Shown here: positions 29,120 to 60,102 of the stretch, in pieces
How positions within the stretch are numbered: position 1 is the stretch's first letter
How the letters are laid out: every line of letters starts with the position of its first letter
Assembly: GCF_963921235.1 (NCBI RefSeq)
Contig: NC_086105.1
Coordinates: forward strand, 44,888,001-44,952,000
Source: Mobula hypostoma
Taxonomy: Eukaryota
DNA: 64,000 nucleotides
Direction of reading: 5' to 3'
The notes under the pieces: generated by a model
Database searches by the model: none
Seen by the model: only the letters and a program-made list of their open reading frames with translations
Told to the model about the DNA's origin: nothing
Translations under genes and position numbers: made by a program

Positions 29120-30460
29120 AGACTGAAAGGCCTAGCCATATCTCCTTTCTCTGAGTCAGTGGGATAGCCCCATCCTGAACCCCAGGCAAGAGATCCCTGA
29201 ACAACTGCCATATTTCTGTTGTGCATTGCCCTGAGAACATCTGTTTCCAATATACGCTCCTAAGTTGCTGCCTAATAACATCATAATTAGCCCTCCTCAA
29301 TTAAATACTTTCCTATATAATTTGCTCCCATTCTCAGTAGAACAACACAGAACACAAGCAACAACAGTAAAGCAACCCAACTCCTGTTCCTCCCTCACAT
29401 CCAAGCACATATAGTCCTTTAGCCCCAAGATAGGCCTCTAGCTTCCAACAGACTTGAACCTGCAGACACTGGGCTTCTCAGAGGTCACACCTCAGTACCA
29501 TCTTTAATGTCTATTCCCTAAGTTCATCACTCTTAATCTTTCAACATACTTCAACCCTCCAACTGACTATATATGCCCTTTCCACTACCTATCCTTCCTT
29601 GGTCCGTGCACATTGCATCTAACTTTACACCAACTGCTCCATCACTTGACCTAATGCTCTGCATCCCATTCCTCTCCCAGTGTAGTTTAAATCCTCAACA
29701 GCTCTAGCCACCCATCTCTGTTACACAGGTGATACTTTCCCCAAAAGAGATCCCAATGATCCACAAACCTGAAACGCTGTCTGCTGCACCAACACTTAAG
29801 TCATGCATTCTTCTGCTGCATTGGCCTGTTCTTACCCTTGCAGACATGTGGCACACTCAGCAATCTATTCTTAAGGTCTGGCTTTTTAGCTTCCTTCCTT
29901 CCTGACTTTTTATGTTCATCCCCTTTTCTGGCTATGTCATTGGTACCAATGTGCACCATAATTTCTGGCTGCCTACCCTCCTCCTTAAGAATGCTGTGGA
30001 CTTAATCCTGGCAATTGGGAGGCAACATATCATCTAGGAGTCTTGTTCTCATCAAGTCTTCTGTCTGTACCCCGAACTAATGCATTCCTATCACTGCCCG
30101 TCTCCTCTTTTTTCCTCTCTTTCTCCCTCATCTGATCCATAGAACCAGATTCGGTGCCAAAGAATGCAACTTTCCCCGGTAGGCAGTCCTCCCCAACAGC
30201 ATCCAAAGTGGTATACTTGTTATTGAGGGTAACAGCCATGGGGTACCCTGCAATGACTACCTATTCCCTTTCCCTTCCAATTCCCTGCCTTTGTAAGTCC
30301 CATCTATCAATCCTCAGCCTCCTGAATTTTCCAGAGTTCATCCAGCTCCTGTTCCTAACACACTCCACAAGGAGCTTCAGCTGAATGTACTTCTAACAAA
30401 TGTAATCTAGGATACTGGAGGTCTCTCTGACTTCCTACATCCTGCAAGGGGAACATATCA
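29120..30460 (-). mobile_element. Old CR1 LINE 5' part (ORF1 zinc-finger/esterase remnant, ORF1/ORF2 junction, ORF2 scraps)
   Basis: MAVTLNNKYTTLDAVGEDCLPG..GTESGS..LVRGTDRR parallels the ORF1 at 37836-38394; TTTAAAC on the minus strand at 29685-29691. Confidence 0.75.
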
Positions 30461-32921: not shown

Positions 32922-34830
32922 AATGTATATAGCAAATGGCAAAGGTTCTAGCATAAACTTTTGTGATGTGTTTGCTGGAACTGGACTGTGTACAAACTTT
33001 TTTTGATTACAGCTTACACTTTCCCCCATCTTTTAACATACACTAATCTTGAAATTGTGTTCAACTTTAGGTGCTGAGTGGTTGATCCACCTTGGCTTTC
33101 TACTTTAGGTCCCTACAATTACAGTCAGTTTGGTTCAGTCATCTGATGTCAAGAAAAGGTTGACAACAGTGAATTTAGCAAAAGCTTTGGGGTCATCTGT
33201 AGCATTTGAACCCTGATGCACTCCAGCCCAGTTTTTCCAGTACACTTTACAATGTCTCCTTGACATTATGAAAGCTTGTTCGGGTATAGAGAAAATTCAA
33301 TCCAGTCCAATGTAATGGCTGCCCAATCTTTCTACACTCTAACATCAATGAAGTTATGGAAAGTGTTGGTGAGAGCATTTGTATCCAATAAGCTAATATC
33401 CCATAAGTTGATAGGCACAATGGTTAAAAGAATCCAGTGTGTGGAGCCACCTCAACAACGAAAGGTGGTTGTAATTTTTGAAATGCAATAAAACCAGCCG
33501 CACATTAGAGTTCCAGTACCTAGCAAAACTAATCCCATTTACTACGACTTAGTAACCCACTGTGCCCTGGCAACTTGCGTGCATCTCTAGATGCTTATTA
33601 AATGTTGTTATAGTACCTGCCTCATCCACTGCCACAGGTAATGCATTTCTGATTGCAATCATCTTCTGGGTCAAAAAAAATTCAGCCTCAGATCCCCTCC
33701 AAATCTCCTATCTGGACACTGTCCTGGTCCCAATCATTAAGTGCTTCACCAATGATGTTCCATTCATTAAAAATTAAATGTTCCTTTGGTAATTGTTCAG
33801 AAAATGAAGCAATTCCTATTTGCGTGTGGGAGCACATAGGCAATATGAAGGCAAAATTGCTAAACACAAGTAGCATTTGCGTTATACGAATGCCAAGTAA
33901 TGAGTATCTCCATTTAAGAGGATACTAAACCATCTACTCTTAATGTTCAGTGGTATTACCATTAATCCTCCAATGTCAATAACCTCAAGATGAGGGTTAG
34001 ACCGACAACTCAATATGATGGCTACAATTGCAAGTTAGAAGGCCAATACACTGGGCTAAATATGTTAGAATATCCTTTGCTTGTCAGGAAGAGTGTGTTT
34101 CCAACAGCACTCAAACATGCTAAGATCCAGGGCAAAGCTCCCTGCTTGATTAGCACCCTATCAGTCATTCTAAACATACCCTTCTGCCACCATTGCAGCA
34201 TTACATACCATCTGTGCAATTAACTGCAGTCCCCAGCCACCTGTCCAGGCCTCCCTGGAGCATATCCATAACGCTGAAATCTGTCAGCAAAAAAGACAGC
34301 ACTGGTGGGTGTAGTCAATACCAACTGCACATTTCCTTTTTCAGGCACCATCTTCAGTTGGAAATATTTTACGATTCCATGATAAAGACTCAGCAACAGT
34401 GAAGGATCCACCCCTTCAACTTTAGTGGGAACTCTTATCAGTAGTGTATCAGTGGCTCATTACCAACCTCTTGCATTTAGGAACAAGCAATAGATGCTGG
34501 TTTTGCTAATAGGATCTGCATTCTCTGAAACAAATGATAAAGCATTCTAAGGAACCGCACAGAATAATAAAAAAACAGACTTTTAGCACCATGCAGCATT
34601 GAGTATATTAATACAGTTCACTAAAGGCAGCCATGTACAATAAAATGAAATCTTGACCTCACATTCCAACTTATTATGCCTTGCTGCACTTTCTCTGTAA
34701 CTTTATCACTATTCTGCATTCTGTTATTAAACATAGAAACATAGAAACATAGAAAATAGGTGCAGGAGTAGGCCATTCGGCCCTTCGAGCCTGCACCGCC
34801 ATTTATTATGATCATGGCTGATCATCCAAC

Positions 34831-37800
34831 TCAGAACCCAGCCTTCCCTCCATACCCCCTGACCCCTGTAGCCACAAGGGCCATATCTAACTTCCTTTTA
34901 AACATAGCTAATGAACTGGCCTCAACAGTTTCCTGTGGCAGAGAATTCCACAGATTCACCACTCTCTGTGTGAAGAAGTTTTTCCTAACCTCGGTCCTAA
35001 AAGGCTTCCCCTCTATCCTCAAACTGTGACCCCTCGTTCTAGACCTCCCCAACATCGGGAACAATCTTCCCGCATCTAGCCTGTCCAATCCCTTTAGGAT
35101 CTTATACGTTTCAATCAGATCCCCCCTCAATCTTCTAAATTCCAACGAGTACAAGCCCAGTTCATCCAGTCTTTCTTCATATGAAAGACCTGCCATCCCA
35201 GGAATCAATCTGGTGAACCTTCTTTGTACTCCCTCTATGGCAAAGATGTCTTTCCTCAGATTAGGGGACCAAAACTGCACACAATACTCCAGGTGTGGTC
35301 TCACCAAGGCCTTGTACAACTGCAGTAGTACCTCCCTGCTCCTGTACTCGAATCCTCTCGCTATAAATGCCAGCATACTGTTCGCCTTTTTCACCGCCTG
35401 CTGCACCTGCATGCCCACTTTCAATGACTGGTGTATAATGACACCCAGGTCTCGTTGCACCTCCCCTTTTCCTAATCGGCCACCATTCAGATAATAATCT
35501 GTTTTCCTATTTTTGCCACCAAAGTGGATAACTTCACATTTATCCACATTAAATTGCATCTGCCATGAGTTTGCCCACTCACCCAACCTATCCAAGTCAC
35601 CCTGCATCCTCTTAGCATCCTCCTCACTGCTAACACTGCCACCCAGCTTCGTGTCATCCGCAAACTTGGAGATGCTGCATTTAATTCCCTCATCCAAGTC
35701 ATTAATATATATTGTAAACAACTGGGGTCCCAGCACTGAGCCTTGCGGTACCCCACTAGTCACCGCCTGCCATTCTGAAAAGGTCCCGTTTATTCCCACT
35801 CTTTGCTTCCTGTCTGCTAACCAATTCTCCACCCACACCAATACCTTACCCCCAATACCGTGTGCTTTAAGTTTGCACACTAATCTCCTGTGTGGGACCT
35901 TGTCAAAAGCCTTTTGAAAATCCAAATATACCACATCCACTGGTTCTCCCCTATCCACTCTACTAGTTACATCCTCAAAAAATTCTATGAGATTCGTCAG
36001 ACATGATTTTCCTTTCACAAATCCATGCTGACTTTGTCCGATCATTTCACCGCTTTCCAAATGTGCTGTTATCACATCCTTGATAACTGACTCCAGCAGT
36101 TTCCCCACCACCGACGTTAGGCTAACCGGCCTATAATTCCCCGGTTTCTCTCTCCCTCCTTTTTTAAAAAGTGGGGTTACATTAGCCACCCTCCAATCCT
36201 CAGGAACTAGTCCAGAATCTAACGAGTTTTGAAAAATTATCACTAATGCATCCACTATTTCTTGGGCCACTTCCTTAAGCACTCTGGGATGCAGACCATC
36301 TGGCCCTGGGGATTTATCTGCCTTCAATCCCTTCAATTTACCTAACACCACTTCCCTACTAACATGTATTTCGCTCAGTTCCTCCATCTCACTGGACCCT
36401 CTGTCCCTTACTATTTCTGGAAGATTATTTATGTCCTCCTTAGTGAAGACAGAACCAAAGTAATTATTCAATTGGTCTGCCATGTCCTTGCTCCCCATAA
36501 TCAATTCACCTGTTTCTGTTTGCAGGGGACCTACATTTGTCTTTATCAGTCTTTTCCTTTTTACATATCTATAAAAGCTTTTACAGTCCGTTTTTATGTT
36601 CTCTGCCAGTTTTCTCTCATAATCTTTTTTCCCCTTCCTAATTAAGCCCTTTGTCCTCCTCTGCTGAACTCTGAATTTCTCCCAGTCCTCAGGTGAGCCA
36701 CTTTCTCTGGCTAATTTGTATGCTACTTCTTTGGAATTGATACTATCCCTAATTTCTCTTGTCAGCCACGGGTGCACTACCTTCCTTGATTTATTCTTTT
36801 GCCAAACTGGGATGAACAATTGTTGTAGTTCATCCATGCAACCTTTAAATGCCTGCCATTGCATATCCACCGTCAATCCTTGAAGTGTCATTTGCCAGTC
36901 TATCTTAGCTAATTCACGTCTCATACCTTCAAAGTTACCCCTCTTTAAGTTCAGAACCTTTGTTTCTGAATTAACTACGTCACTCTCCATGTTAATGAAG
37001 AATTCCACCATATTATGGTCACTCTTACCCAAGGGGCCTCTCACGACAAGATCGCTAATTAACCCTTCCTCATTGCTCAAAACCCAGTCCAGAATAGCCT
37101 GCTCTCTAGTCGGTTCCTCGGCATGTTGGTTCAAAAAACCATCCCGCATACATTCCAAGAAATCCTCTTCCTCAGCACCTTTACCAATTTGGTTCACCCA
37201 GTCTACATGTAGATTGAAGTCACCCATTATAACTGCTGTTCCTTTATTGCACACATTTCTAATTTCCTGTTTAATACCATCTCCGACCTCACTACTACTG
37301 TTAGGTGGCCTGTACACAACTCCCACCAGCGTCTTCTGCCCCTTAGTGTTACGCAGCTCTACCCATATCAATTCCACATCTTCCCGGCTTATGTCCTTCC
37401 TTTCTATTGCGTTAATCTCTTTTTTAACCAGCAACGCCACCCCACCTCCCCTTCCTTCATGTCTATCCCTCCTGAATATTGAATATCCCTGAACGTTGAG
37501 CTCCCATCCCTGGTCACCCTGGAGCCATGTCTCTGTGATCCCAACTATATCATAATCATTAATAACAATCTGCACTTTCAATTCATCCACCTTATTACGA
37601 ATGCTCCTTGCATTGACACATAAAGCCTTCAGGCGCTCTTTTACAACTCTCTTAGCCCTTTTTAATGCTTGCCCTGGATTTGTCGGCCTGCCACTTTTAC
37701 TTTTCCCCTTTGTACTTTTTGCTTCTACGCTCACTTTACACCCCTCTGTCTCTCTGCGCTGGTTCCCATCCCTCTGTTGTGAACTAACCTCCTCACACCT

Positions 37801-37851
37801 AGCCGCTTTAATTTGATTCCCACCCCCCAACCATTCTAGTTTAAAGTCACC
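34831..37851 (-). CDS. CR1 ORF2: APE endonuclease and reverse transcriptase; open frame with no N-terminal AUG
   Basis: NARS, GITETW, YRPP, GDFN and SDH endonuclease motifs; [36 protein letters not shown] and FADD RT motifs; no stops over more than 999 codons. Confidence 0.95.
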   Translation of the reverse strand, partial: GDFKLEWLGGGNQIKAARCEEVSSQQRDGNQRRETEGCKVSVEAKSTKGKSKSGRPTNPGQALKRAKRVVKERLKALCVNARSIRNKVDELKVQIVINDYDIVGITETWLQGDQGWELNVQGYSIFRRDRHEGRGGGVALLVKKEINAIERKDISREDVELIWVELRNTKGQKTLVGVVYRPPNSSSEVGDGIKQEIRNVCNKGTAVIMGDFNLHVDWVNQIGKGAEEEDFLECMRDGFLNQHAEEPTREQAILDWVLSNEEGLISDLVVRGPLGKSDHNMVEFFINMESDVVNSETKVLNLKRGNFEGMRRELAKIDWQMTLQGLTVDMQWQAFKGCMDELQQLFIPVWQKNKSRKVVHPWLTREIRDSINSKEVAYKLARESGSPEDWEKFRVQQRRTKGLIRKGKKDYERKLAENIKTDCKSFYRYVKRKRLIKTNVGPLQTETGELIMGSKDMADQLNNYFGSVFTKEDINNLPEIVRDRGSSEMEELSEIHVSREVVLGKLKGLKADKSPGPDGLHPRVLKEVAQEIVDALVIIFQNSLDSGLVPEDWRVANVTPLFKKGGREKPGNYRPVSLTSVVGKLLESVIKDVITAHLESGEMIGQSQHGFVKGKSCLTNLIEFFEDVTSRVDRGEPVDVVYLDFQKAFDKVPHRRLVCKLKAHGIGGKVLVWVENWLADRKQRVGINGTFSEWQAVTSGVPQGSVLGPQLFTIYINDLDEGIKCSISKFADDTKLGGSVSSEEDAKRMQGDLDRLGEWANSWQMQFNVDKCEVIHFGGKNRKTDYYLNGGRLGKGEVQRDLGVIIHQSLKVGMQVQQAVKKANSMLAFIARGFEYRSREVLLQLYKALVRPHLEYCVQFWSPNLRKDIFAIEGVQRRFTRLIPGMAGLSYEERLDELGLYSLEFRRLRGDLIETYKILKGLDRLDAGRLFPMLGRSRTRGHSLRIEGKPFRTEVRKNFFTQRVVNLWNSLPQETVEASSLAMFKRKLDMALVATGVRGYGGKAGF

Positions 37852-38394
37852 TCAGTAGCCCCCGCTAATCTCCCTGCCAGGATATTGGTCCCCCTAGGTT
37901 TTAAGTGTAACCCGTCCTTTTTGTACAGGTCACACCTGCGCCAAAAGAGGTCCCAATGATCCAAAAACTTGAATCCCTGCCCCCTGCTCCAATCCCTCAG
38001 CCACGCATTTATCCTCCACCTCATCGCATTACTACTCTCACTGTCGCGTGGCACAGGCAGTAATCCCGAGATTACTACCTTTGCGGTCCTTTTTCTCAAC
38101 TCCCTTCCTAGCTCCCTATATTCTTCTTTCAGGACCTCATCCCTTTTCCTACCTATGTCATTGGTACCTATATGTACCAGGACCTCTGGCTCTTCACCCT
38201 CCCACTTCAGGATATCTTGGACACGATCAGAAATATCCCGGACCCTGGCACCAGGGAGGCAAACTACCATCCGAGTCTCTGGACTGCGTCCACAGAATCG
38301 CCTATCTGACCCCCTTACTATCGAGTCCCCTATCACAACTGCCCTCCTCTTCCTTGCCCTACCCTTCTGAGCTACAGGGCCAGACTCTGTACCC
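37836..38394 (-). CDS. CR1 ORF1 C-terminal SGNH esterase domain (5'-truncated)
   Basis: VIGDSIVRG, CLPGA, HIGTND and DGLHL blocks. The N-terminus of the track ORF (38395-38465) is flanking DNA. Confidence 0.9.
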
Positions 38395-47819: not shown

Positions 47820-49557
47820 TAGAACATAGAACATAGAACAGTACAGCACAGTACAGGCCCTTCGGCCCACAATGTTGTGCCGACCCTTAAACCCTGCCTC
47901 CCATATAACCCCCACCTTAAATTCCTCCATATACTTGTCTAGTAGTCTCTCATAGTTTGCTAGTGTATCTGCCTCCACCACTGACTCAGGCAGTGCATTC
48001 CACGCACCAATCACTCTCTGAGTAAAAAAACCTTCCTCTAATATCCCCCTTGAACTTCCCAACCCTTAACTTAAAGCCATGTCCTCTTGTATTGAGCAGT
48101 GGTGCCCTGGGGAAGAGGCGCTTGCTATCCACTCTATCTATTCCTCTTATTATCTTGTACACCTCTATCATGTCTCCTCTCATCCTCCTTCTCTCCAAAG
48201 AGTAAAGCCCTAGCTCCCTTAATCTCTAATCATAATGCACACTCTCTGAACCAGGCAGCATCCTGGTAAATCTCCTCTGTACCCTTTCCAATGTTTCCAC
48301 ATCCTTCCACTAGTGAGGTGACCAGAACTGGACACAGTACTCCAAGTGTGCCCTAACCAGAGTTTTATAGAGATGCATCATTACCCAGCAACTCTTAAAC
48401 TCTATCCCTTGACTTATGAAAGCTAACACTCCATAAGCTTTCTTAACTACCCTATTTACCTGTGAGGCAACTTTCAGGGATCTGTGGACATGTACCCCCA
48501 GATCCCTCTGCTCCTCCACACTTCCAAGTATCCTGCCATTTACATTGTACTCTGCCTTGGAGCTTGTCCTTCCAAAGTGTACCACCTCACACTTCTCCGG
48601 GTTGAACTCCATCTGCCACTTCTCAGCCCACTTCTGCATCCTATCAATGTCTCTCTGCAATCTTCAACAATCCTCTACACTATCCACAACACCACCAACC
48701 TTTGTGTCGTCTGCAAACTTGCCAACACACCCTTCTACCCCCACATCCAGGTCGTTAATAAAAATCACGAAAAGTAGAGGTCGCAGAACTGATCCTTGTG
48801 GGACACCACTAGTCACAACCCTCCAATCCGAATGTACTCCCTCTATCACGACCCTCTGCTTTCTGCAGGCAAGCCAATTCTGAATCCACCTGGCCAAACT
48901 TCCCTGGATCCCATGCCTTCTGACTTTCTGAATAAGCCTACTGTGTGGAACCTTGTCAAATGCCTTACTAAAATCCATATAGATCACATCTACTGCACTA
49001 CCCTCATCTATATGCCTGGTCACCTCCTCAAAGAACTCTATCAGGCTTGTTAGACATGATCTGCCCTTCACAAAGCTATGCTGACTGTCCCTGATCAGAC
49101 CATGATTCTCTAAATGCGAACAGATCCTATCTCTAAGAATCTTTTCCAACAGCTTTCCCACCACAGATGTAAGACTCACTGGTCTATAATTACCCGGATT
49201 TTCCCTACTACCATTTTTGAACAAGGGGACAACATTTGCCTCCCTCCAATCCGCCGGTACCATTCCCGTGGACGATGAGGACATAAAGATCCTAGCCAGA
49301 GGCTCAGCAATCTCTTCCCTCACCTCGTGGAGCAGCCTGGGGAATATTCTGTAAGGCCCCGGAGACTTATCTATCCTAATGTATTTTAACAACTCCAACA
49401 CCTCCTCTCCCTTAATATCAACATGCTCCAGAACATCAACCTCACTCATATTGTCCGCACCATCATCAAGTTCCCTCTCATTGGTGAATACCGAAGAGAA
49501 GTATTCATTGAGGACCTCACTCACTTTCACAGCCTCCAGGCACATCTCCCCATCTTT
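47820..49557 (-). mobile_element. CR1 LINE (different subfamily), 5'-truncated RT with a few stops
   Basis: (AGAACAT)n tail; ORFs 48664-49590, 48310-48660 and 47986-48198 with [18 protein letters not shown] and LEYCVQFWSP. Confidence 0.95.
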
Positions 49558-51716: not shown

Positions 51717-52467
51717 ATAAGACCATAGGACATAGGAGCAGAATTAGGCCATTTGGCCAATTGAGTCTGCTCCAAAATTTCATCACGGCTGATCCAATTT
51801 TCCCTCTCAGCCCTAATATCCTCCCTTCTTCCTGTAACACTTCATGCCCTGACTAATCAAGAATCTACCACCCTCAGCCTTAAATATGCCCAATGACTTG
51901 GCCTCCACAGCCACCTGTGGCGACAAATACACAGATTCACCACTCTCTAGCTAAAGAAATTCCTCCTCATCTTCATTCTAAAAGGATGCCCCTATATTCT
52001 GAGGCGGAGTCCTCTGGTCTTAGACTCCCCCACCATAGGAAGTATCCTCTCCACATCCACTCTGTCGAGGCCCTTCAACATTTGATAGGTTTCAATGAGA
52101 TCCCCCTTCATTCTTCTGAAATCCAGTGAATACTGACTCAGAGCCATCAAACACTCGTATTATGGCAAGCCTTTCAATCCTGGAATCATTTTCATGAACC
52201 TCCTTTGAACCCTCTCCAATGTCAGCACATCATTTCCTAAATAAGGGGCCCAAAATTGCTCACAATACACCAAGTGAGGCCTCGCTCGTGCTTTATAAAA
52301 CCTTAACATTACATCCTTGCTTTTATATTCTCGTCTTCTCGAAATGAATGCTAACATCGCACTTGTCTTCCTCACCACTGACGCAACCTGCAAATTAACC
52401 TTTAGGGAACCCTGCACAAGGAGTCCCAAGTCCCTTTGCACCTCAGATTTTTTAATTTTCTCTCCAT
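51717..52467 (-). mobile_element. CR1 LINE 3' fragment
   Basis: QRDLGLLVQGSLK..RPHLVYCEQFWAP; 3' end cataggagcagaattaggcc. Confidence 0.88.
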
Positions 52468-58629: not shown

Positions 58630-60102
58630 TAAGGAGGGGTAGTCAACAAGGCTTTGCACATGGTAAATCGTGCCGAACCAATCTTAAAGATTTTTGAAGA
58701 AGTTACCCAGAAAAGTTAATGAAGGTATGGCAGTGGATGTTGTCTATGTGGACTTTAGCAAGGCCTTTGACAAGGAAGCTAGTCAAGAAGATTCGGTTGC
58801 TTGGCATTCAAGATGAGGTAGTAAATTGGATAAGACATTGGCTTCATGGAAGAAGCCAGAGAGTGGTTCTAGATGCTTCCCTTTCTGACTGGAAGCTTGT
58901 GACAAGTGGTGTGCTGCAGGGATCAGTGCTGGGTCTGTTGCTGTTTGTCATTTATTTCAATGATCTGGATAATAATGTGGTAAACTGGATCAGCTAGTTT
59001 GCGGATGACGTCAAGATTGGGAGTGTAGTGGATAGCGAAGAATACTACCAGAGCTTGCAGTGGGATCTGGACTAGCTGGAAAATGGCAGATGGAATTTAA
59101 ATCAGAGAAGTGTGAGGTGTTGCACTTTGGGAGGACCAAGCAAGGTAGGTCTTACATGGTGAGTGGTAGGGCACTGACGAGTGCGGTCAAACAGATGGAT
59201 CTGGGAACACAAATTTATAATTCCTTGAACGTGGCGTCACAGGAAGATAGGGTCGTGAAGAAAGCTTCCGGTACATTAGCCTTCTTAAGTCAATGTATTG
59301 AGTACAGGAGATGGGATGCTATGTTGAAATTGTATAAGATGTTGGTGAGGCTTAATTTGGAGTATTGTGTGCAATTATGGTCTCCTACCTACGGGAAAGA
59401 TGTAAATAAGACTGACAGAGTACAAAGAAAATTCACAGGGATGTTGTCAGTCCTTGAGGACCTGAGTTATAGGGAAAGGCTGAATAGGTTAGGATTTCAT
59501 TCACTAGAATATAGAAGATTGAGGGAAGATTTGATAGTGGTATACAAAATTATGAGGAGTATGAATAGGGTAAATGAAAGCAACACACATAAAAGTTGCT
59601 GGTGAACGCAGCAGGCCAGGCAGCATCTCTAGGAAGAGGACCCTTCGTCAGGACTCGGCCTGAAACATCAACTGCACCTCTTCCTAGAGATGCTGCCTGG
59701 CCTGCTGCGTTCACCAGCAACTTTGATGTGTGTTGCTTGAATTTCCAGCATCTGCAGAATTCCTGTTGTTAGGGTAAATGCAAGCAGGCTTTTTTCACTG
59801 AGGTTGGGTGAGACTAACAAGAGGCCATGGGCTAAGAGTGAAAGGTGGAATGTTTATGGAGAACATGAGGGGGATCTTCACTCAACAGGTGGTGATAGTG
59901 TTGAATGAGCTGCCAGTGCAAGTGATGGATGCGGGATTGGTTCCAACATTTAATAGATATTTGGTTAGGTACATGGATGAGAGGGGCATGGAGGGGGTTG
60001 GTCCAGGTGCAGGTCCTTGGTACTAGGAAGATTAATGGTTCAACACAGACTAGATGGGCCAAAGGGCCTTTCTTCAGTGCTGTAGTGTTCTATGATTCTA
60101 TG
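58630..60102 (+). mobile_element. CR1 LINE RT fragment, decayed
   Basis: VTSGVLQGSVLG, FADD and LEYCVQLWSP; tail ttctatgattctatga. Confidence 0.92.
59577..59769. mobile_element. Palindromic Penelope-derived insertion inside the CR1
   Basis: Near-perfect inverted arms of about 60 bp; TSD tagggtaaatg (59566-59576 and 59770-59780); arm nearly identical to 32530-32586. Confidence 0.9.

Follow-up and report, generated by a model that had tools for sequence, protein, structure and literature searches.

We analysed a 64,000-nucleotide stretch of the genome of the ray Mobula hypostoma (NCBI RefSeq assembly GCF_963921235.1, contig NC_086105.1, positions 44,888,001 to 44,952,000; hereafter the window), which carries on its minus strand a copy of a CR1 long interspersed nuclear element (LINE) with two open reading frames (ORFs), ORF1 encoding an esterase and ORF2 an endonuclease (EN) together with a reverse transcriptase (RT). 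The organisation of the boundary between these frames suggests that the ORF1/ORF2 junction of esterase-type CR1 elements is a site at which ribosomes undergo programmed −1 frameshifting (−1 PRF), which would give rise to an ORF1-ORF2 fusion protein, and we place the probability of this interpretation at roughly 0.7. The proposal was originally made in a first-pass annotation of the window and now finds support in the conservation, across divergent relatives, of a slippery heptamer, its phase, the adjoining stop codon and the −1 position of ORF2.

On the minus strand, ORF1 of the window copy ends with the codons GAG GTG ACT TTA AAC TAG, and the features that define the junction are the following:

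37839 to 37845, minus strand: slippery heptamer T_TTA_AAC, in the X_XXY_YYZ phase of ORF1 (direct reading)
37836 to 37838, minus strand: TAG that ends ORF1, immediately 3′ of the heptamer
37852 to 37854, minus strand: TGA stop in the −1 (ORF2) frame, closing it 6 nt upstream of the heptamer
37819 to 37828, minus strand: G tract GGGGGG T GGG, a conserved feature that starts 10 nt past the heptamer
37615 to 37845, minus strand: linker of 77 codons joining the heptamer to the first endonuclease motif in the −1 frame, with no AUG and no stop
37836 to 38393, minus strand: ORF1 remnant with an SGNH/GDSL esterase domain (Pfam) and the C-terminus ...GATEVTLN*
34831 to 37851, minus strand: open frame of ORF2 (1006 codons and a stop), encoding the endonuclease and the reverse transcriptase

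The −1 frame opens at 37851, which gives an overlap of 16 nt with ORF1, and continues for 1006 codons to 34831. The start assigned mechanically to ORF2 in the ORF listing is a TTG at 37830, and the first ATG in the ORF2 frame is codon 208 (37227), which lies within VIMGDFNLH, leaving no AUG ahead of the catalytic core. Another ATG, at 37834, belongs to the third frame, where a stop is reached after 8 codons (MVGGWESN*). G-rich sequence begins 6 nt past the heptamer, with six Gs at 37828-37823 and GGG at 37821-37819. On re-reading, the sequence agreed with the first-pass annotation on each of these points, namely the phase of the heptamer just before the ORF1 stop, the opening, overlap and TTG start of the −1 frame, the position of the two ATGs (the first in the GDFN motif, the other in the third frame) and the placement of the G-rich tract. 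From base frequencies alone, we estimate the chance of a canonical in-phase heptamer within the 16-nt overlap of a single copy to be below about 1%. Contigs of this genome, which number in the hundreds and derive from four runs, contain no variant at a frequency of at least 10% between 37806 and 37861, and another subfamily in the same genome has an ORF1 ending in ...GAG AGT TTA AA.

Comparison of the junction DNA across relatives had been set beforehand as the test of the frameshift interpretation. Relatives were collected without reference to the heptamer, using homologues of ORF2 and ORF1, which provided contigs with DNA for L001, L002, L003, L007/L008, L009, L010 and L011; a further element, L004, came from an ORF1-profile scan of metagenome contigs, in which the other matches were bacterial lipases. 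The nine independent junctions available for comparison (the window, L001-L004, L007, L009, L010 and L011) represent rays and sharks as well as a coelacanth-like element and frog-like elements. In the six relatives out of eight for which ORF1 was compared directly, it is 38-58% identical to that of the window copy (the L009 protein is 48% identical), and the N-terminal part of ORF2 is 41-62% identical. The block xxT TTA AAC TAR is invariant in all nine junctions, with ORF2 in the −1 frame in every element, and the ORF1 stop, either TAG or TAA, is found at the same place throughout, exactly 26 residues past the start of a DGLHL motif. Chance can be excluded, since the heptamer is identical in nine elements as divergent as these. 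The first-pass annotation had named variation in phase and synonymous variation within the heptamer as outcomes that would speak against frameshifting, and neither was found in the nine junctions.

Several features of the alignment indicate that the conservation of the heptamer exceeds amino acid constraint and acts on the nucleotides themselves. The nine bases TTTAAACTA form the longest invariant run of the 174-column alignment, GGGGG being the next block, and the flanks are variable; elsewhere in the alignment synonymous sites are saturated. The terminal leucine is encoded by TTA in 9/9 junctions, although TTA accounts for just 12% of leucine codons elsewhere in these ORF1s, and the terminal asparagine is AAC in all nine. 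As a codon control, the DGLHL motif, which lies 20 codons upstream, has an invariant leucine encoded by five different codons and an invariant glycine encoded by four. The codon that precedes TTA is ACT, TCT, TAT, CAT or GGT, so that five amino acids are represented and yet the third base is T in every case. Even with the leucine and asparagine fixed, the probability of the heptamer is only about 0.014 per lineage. A run of 6-11 G follows after a spacer in all nine junctions, accompanied in most by a second G cluster, and the run (at least six G) begins 8-10 nt past the heptamer in 8/9 elements and 5 nt past it in L009. This G run occurs in all three ORF2 codon phases (read as LGG, GGE, RGA, KGG and so on) and is therefore a feature of the nucleotide sequence rather than a protein motif. 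The protein of the coelacanth-like L009 copy (L009:1424-1450) ends in EESLN, like P0158 from Latimeria. In this copy, 11 consecutive Gs lie only 5 nt past the heptamer, and the ORF2 frame is broken after 13 codons. The G homopolymer is evidently liable to change in length in decaying copies, given the 11-G run at shortened spacing in L009.

At the protein level the pattern extends more widely. Among the 120 closest homologues of ORF1, 80 have LN as their last two residues, and visibly truncated or fused models make up most of the remainder; the sources include rays (Mobula, Hypanus, Leucoraja, Pristis, Narcine), sharks, chimaera, teleosts, bichir, coelacanth, frogs and turtles. Residues that have no NNT codon (K, Q, E, M, W) precede LN in just one of these 80 proteins, compared with an expectation of 20% (P = 3e-7). 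An exhaustive profile search of representatives at 50% identity revealed a large additional group ending in ...RRALN; the members whose source was checked belong to lizards, turtles and a frog. In storks, more than 20 gene models of CR1 contain ...SFKLDSKGEG... approximately 97 residues before the endonuclease motif, which is how TTT AAA CTA GAY followed by G-rich codons reads in the ORF2 frame. Since the stork models show this ORF2-frame reading, avian CR1 probably shares the block, although avian and turtle junctions were judged at the protein level only. More distant esterase ORF1 proteins end in ...QGN or ...SGN (P0264, P0271, P0273, P0279, P0283, P0294, P0296, P0330, P0337) or in ...SKN/AKN (P0290, P0343, P0352). 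These GN- and KN-ending representatives are from ENA metagenomes and are known at the protein level only; if encoded as CAG GGA AAC and xxA AAA AAC, the QGN and SKN/AKN ends would correspond to the heptamers G_GGA_AAC and A_AAA_AAC, as their residues suggest. Scanning genome contigs with the ORF1 profile returned bacterial GDSL proteins only, and viral contigs scanned with the main ORF1 profile and a QGN/KN-type profile gave no match.

Two distant elements lack the block at the end of ORF1 and have a different canonical heptamer in its place. L012 is a CR1-like element with a GC content of 35% and a weak GDSL ORF1, which ends in GGT TTT TTA TTA GAA GTC TAG (L012:1634-1652), with T_TTT_TTA in phase and ORF2 at −1. 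In L013, the ORF1 has no Pfam match and ends in AAT TTT TTA TGT TAG (L013:1854-1890), again with T_TTT_TTA in phase and then the stop; an ORF2-frame ATG overlaps this ORF1 end (ATGTTAG), and GGGGG is located 11 nt past the heptamer, followed by GGTGGGTGGAGAGG. The heptamers in these two AT-rich elements are only suggestive, since the elements analysed here contain 1-5 in-phase X_XXY_YYZ heptamers per kb.

How ribosomes might enter ORF2 is constrained by the region that separates the heptamer from the endonuclease. This linker comprises 35-77 codons and is conserved in neither sequence nor length, but its −1 frame is free of stops in 8/8 intact elements, whereas the other frames contain 1-9 stops each (in the window copy, none in the −1 frame versus 6 and 8 in the other two). 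Going by composition, a linker would be open by chance with a probability of 0.003-0.07 in each element. In the window, the −1 frame opens just about 3-6 nt before the heptamer, and in L010 it opens 3 nt before it. An AUG before the endonuclease motif is absent in 3/8 intact elements, and none of the nine U_UUA_AAC junctions has an ORF2-frame AUG near the ORF1 stop, the distant L013 being the only element with one.

We base the following model on the heptamer and its phase, the stop, ORF2 at −1 and the G tract, each conserved in its nucleotides, together with the open linker; slippage, its efficiency and its stimulation by the G tract are inferred. Ribosomes translating ORF1 would arrive at U_UUA_AAC with the stop codon immediately 3′ and with the G tract entering the mRNA channel approximately 8-10 nt downstream. 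A fraction of them would slip back by one base and then continue in the ORF2 frame, either through tandem slippage of tRNA-Leu and tRNA-Asn or through slippage of a P-site tRNA-Asn with the stop codon in the A site, both of which would yield the same product. This would be a minority fusion of ORF1, linker, endonuclease and reverse transcriptase with the predicted junction ...EVTLN-LEWLGGG..., while most ribosomes would terminate to release ORF1 protein (ORF1p) alone, in a ratio resembling that of Gag to Gag-Pol.

Several observations weigh against this interpretation. The first concerns the stimulator, since no Watson-Crick hairpin or pseudoknot was detected after the heptamer in minimum free energy (MFE) folds, computed with and without a G-quadruplex option and compared with shuffled sequences; the 100 nt that follow the stop are no more stable than shuffles (MFE z of −0.5 to +1.1). 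A duplex search did not identify a conserved pairing partner for the G tract, and the region is C-poor (C 10-15%). The only shared stem, GGGGCAG/CUGCCCU, is common to L002 and L003 alone, which are close relatives of each other. At E ≤ 1, Rfam returned a single chance match to NEAT1_2 and no coronavirus-type frameshift element. Because neither a structure nor a partner for the G tract was found, the usual third part of a eukaryotic −1 PRF cassette appears to be absent or unconventional here. Secondly, the first-pass annotation had listed an ORF2-frame AUG upstream of the endonuclease among the findings that would count against a frameshift, and such an AUG is present in 5/8 intact elements, where it could support independent initiation; these AUGs are at non-conserved positions (linker codons 14-38), and the frame is also open upstream of them. 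Thirdly, L012 carries an exact copy of the 13-nt block, TTTAAACTAGGGG, at L012:1823-1835, 170 nt past its ORF1 stop and inside the 5′ part of ORF2, which raises the possibility that the block may have, or may also have, another role. Finally, the absolute conservation of the adjoining stop codon fits a termination-coupled mechanism as well as a frameshift.

With respect to the G tract, its G4Hunter scores of 1.1-2.2 fall within the top 1% of ORF2 windows in 8/9 elements, and ViennaRNA with the quadruplex option placed a G-quadruplex at this position in four elements. It is possible that the tract acts as a quadruplex, as a site for a bound factor or through contact with rRNA. Transcriptional slippage at the G run was considered and rejected, since the run lies downstream of the ORF1 stop, where slippage could not fuse the frames; no indels were present in the contigs.

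The invariant position of the stop directly after the block, together with the conservation just downstream of a G tract with a GGGA core, is also what might be seen if ORF2 were expressed by termination-dependent reinitiation or non-AUG initiation, with the G tract holding the 40S subunit in place, through base pairing to 18S rRNA for example, and with a separate ORF2 protein as the product. Motif 1 of the calicivirus termination upstream ribosome-binding site (TURBS), UGGGA, pairs with 18S rRNA, the ORF2-frame ATG of L013 overlaps the end of ORF1, and the known LINE cases, L1 and SART1, use coupling rather than frameshifting. However, the rRNA-complementary motif in known TURBS is located upstream of the restart site and not downstream, and 8/9 of the U_UUA_AAC junctions have neither an AUG nor a shared near-cognate codon near the stop. 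Moreover, reinitiation has no need for a fixed −1 phase, for a slippery heptamer, for TTA in preference to the other leucine codons or for a preceding wobble T, and would not account for a −1 frame that is held open right up to the heptamer. We therefore regard reinitiation as unlikely, though not negligible.

The displaced block in L012, and the conservation of a G run that has no predicted pairing partner, could alternatively be taken to mean that TTTAAACTAR plus the G run is a nucleic acid signal that operates outside decoding, such as a DNA element or a site for binding or packaging by ORF1p or the ORF2 protein (ORF2p), in which case the ORF1 phase would be incidental and ORF2 would be translated from any available internal AUG or non-AUG codon. 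This explanation is distinctly improbable, since the block lies at the very end of ORF1, in the sole one of three phases that permits tandem slippage and with ORF2 always at −1, and since the open linker argues for entry into the ORF2 frame at the block. Even the displaced block of L012 is in the ORF1 phase, where it ends a 21-codon, AUG-started mini-ORF located 11 codons before the endonuclease motif. Furthermore, the in-phase replacement of the block by another canonical heptamer, T_TTT_TTA, in both L012 and L013 fits a role in decoding and not a sequence-specific binding site. Lastly, a heptamer that was merely inherited and is without function, a view to which the frequency of in-phase heptamers lends itself because any single occurrence means little, is effectively refuted by the absence of variation at any of the nine bases TTTAAACTA in nine elements with saturated synonymous sites, by the low per-lineage probability and by the wobble-T statistic given above.

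Programmed −1 frameshifting thus remains the reading that we favour for the junction. A more far-reaching form of it, which we offer tentatively and consider doubtful as a whole, is that CR1 ORF2 is expressed solely as a −1 fusion, with the G tract and the stop codon rather than a pseudoknot acting as stimulator and with sister lineages swapping one heptamer for another; such an arrangement would presumably be ancient, given that the frameshift signal is retained in every vertebrate class sampled.

The proposed site has counterparts in well-characterised recoding systems. In Rous sarcoma virus (RSV), the gag-pol site A_AAU_UUA is followed directly by the gag UAG and by G-rich sequence, where a large stem-loop/pseudoknot starts. 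In layout, the CR1 junction comes closest to this site, with the heptamer in the last two sense codons, the stop immediately 3′, G-rich sequence next and, as predicted here, an RT fusion made at a low ratio; it differs in that the G-rich sequence has no complementary strand, the element is a LINE without long terminal repeats (LTRs) and the upstream protein is an esterase rather than Gag. The coronavirus ORF1a/1b site has the identical heptamer U_UUA_AAC and a downstream ORF that encodes a polymerase, but a three-stem pseudoknot is located 5-6 nt downstream and there is no adjacent stop, whereas Rfam detected no such element at the CR1 junction. Protein-dependent −1 PRF is exemplified by the arterivirus that causes porcine reproductive and respiratory syndrome (PRRSV), in which a C-rich motif is bound by nsp1beta/PCBP, and by the 2A protein of cardioviruses. 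These systems resemble the CR1 junction in that a conserved stretch without structure lies about 10 nt 3′ of the site of slippage, with no pseudoknot, although the CR1 motif is G-rich instead of C-rich and a G-quadruplex is an alternative. We know of no trans-acting factor for the G-rich motif of CR1.

Amongst LINEs, reinitiation has been proposed for L1, and coupling at UAAUG has been shown for SART1 of Bombyx. As would be the case for CR1, a low level of ORF2 product is obtained from a bicistronic LINE RNA by events centred on the ORF1 stop; in contrast to the situation proposed here, however, L1 and SART1 produce a separate ORF2p and require neither a slippery site nor a fixed −1 phase, and the overlapping AUG that SART1 requires is absent from the CR1 junction. 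The first-pass annotation also stated that ORF2 of ZfL2-1 is made by termination-reinitiation, a statement for which we found no source and which is not confirmed. Translation of human L1 ORF2 by termination/reinitiation is discussed in a review of recoding (PMC5009743), which covers −1 PRF in LTR elements of Drosophila, in PEG10 (G_GGA_AAC) and in PNMA/Ma3, as well as a frameshift in HeT-A gag and open questions for TART and L1, and describes no −1 PRF between ORF1 and ORF2 of a LINE. Retroelement −1 PRF in the LTR, PEG10 and PNMA cases sets the ratio of the ORF1 product to the RT fusion, as predicted for CR1, although those are LTR or gag-pol elements with pseudoknots. A 2026 survey of the CR1 group makes no mention of overlap or frameshifting (PMC13343379), nor does the paper that describes the esterase structure (PMC3905857). 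In the full-text literature we found no report of −1 PRF at the ORF1/ORF2 junction of CR1 or of any other LINE, although older CR1 papers were not covered and an earlier mention is possible. Whilst −1 PRF itself is known, its use by a LINE clade, with a G tract and stop codon in place of a pseudoknot, would appear to be new.

The remaining features of the element and of a related fragment in the window are as follows:

34729 to 38393, minus strand: 5′-truncated CR1 LINE copy with partial ORF1, complete ORF2, 3′ untranslated region (UTR) and tail repeats (Pfam and ORF1 alignment)
about 34729 to 34756, minus strand: CR1-type 3′ tail of octamer repeats, (ATGTTTCT)x3, without poly(A)
29682 to 29992, minus strand: second, older CR1 ORF1 fragment (blastn, 75-76% identity)

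The ORF1 remnant matches Lipase_GDSL_2 in Pfam (1.9e-15) and the esterase structure of ZfL2-1 ORF1, 4C1B (8e-28), and ORF2 combines an N-terminal endonuclease of the apurinic type (Exo_endo_phos, 1e-11; Exo_endo_phos_2, 1.7e-9) with a reverse transcriptase (RVT_1, 1e-33). Assignment to the CR1 group is from best matches, the relatives of ORF2 including avian CR1 gene models. The copy is 5′-truncated, because its ORF1 can be aligned only from residue 127 of a 311-aa M. hypostoma ORF1 (98% identity) and the N-terminal third is absent. It is thus a dead insertion that merely preserves the junction signal of its parental family, to which that signal belongs. Just past the ORF2 stop and before the octamer tail, the 3′ UTR (34760-34830, minus strand) has the inverted repeat ggtgcagg ... 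cctgcacc, at the place where the 3′ stem-loop that the RT recognises is usually found in CR1. The older ORF1 fragment retains GAT TTA AAC (29691-29685), but its stop codon is mutated to TAC and the downstream G tract is degenerate. More diverged LINE ORF2 fragments, 65-74% identical to the RT region of the element, are located at 48316-49266, 51880-52357 and 58879-59387.

A number of database entries contain CR1 sequence under other names. P0004 from Hypanus, annotated as 'hydroxyacid oxidase 2 isoform X1', is a single-exon, in-frame fusion of esterase and endonuclease that is really a piece of CR1. It was rejected as evidence for the fusion protein, since the ORF2 frame is read through from upstream of the heptamer, as in a copy with an indel. 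The esterase of CR1 ORF1 is also included in P0136 from Pristis ('40S ribosomal protein S24 isoform X2') and in the P0231/P0232 isoforms of 'transmembrane protein 204' from Mobula birostris, and two entries assigned to bacteria, P0165 ('Pseudomonas aeruginosa SGNH/GDSL hydrolase') and P0009 (a 'Carnobacterium maltaromaticum' reverse transcriptase), appear to be vertebrate sequences that contaminate bacterial assemblies.

How LINE ORF2 is translated from a bicistronic RNA is a long-standing question, the answers to which have so far involved reinitiation, as in L1 and SART1. In sharks, reptiles and birds, esterase-type CR1 LINEs rank with the most abundant transposons, and if the frameshift interpretation is correct, a major LINE clade, the first with decoding of the Gag-Pol type, would use the retroviral solution to produce an esterase-EN-RT fusion, with implications for cis-preference and for assembly of the ribonucleoprotein particle. 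The junction would provide a compact natural cassette of about 30 nt, with a stop codon and a G tract taking the place of the usual pseudoknot, and, should the G tract act as stimulator, a natural case of G-tract-stimulated frameshifting. Frameshifting would also explain why CR1 ORF2 frequently lacks a start codon and is mis-annotated by gene predictors, and xxT TTA AAC TAR followed by a G run would then serve as a simple marker of potentially active CR1 copies.

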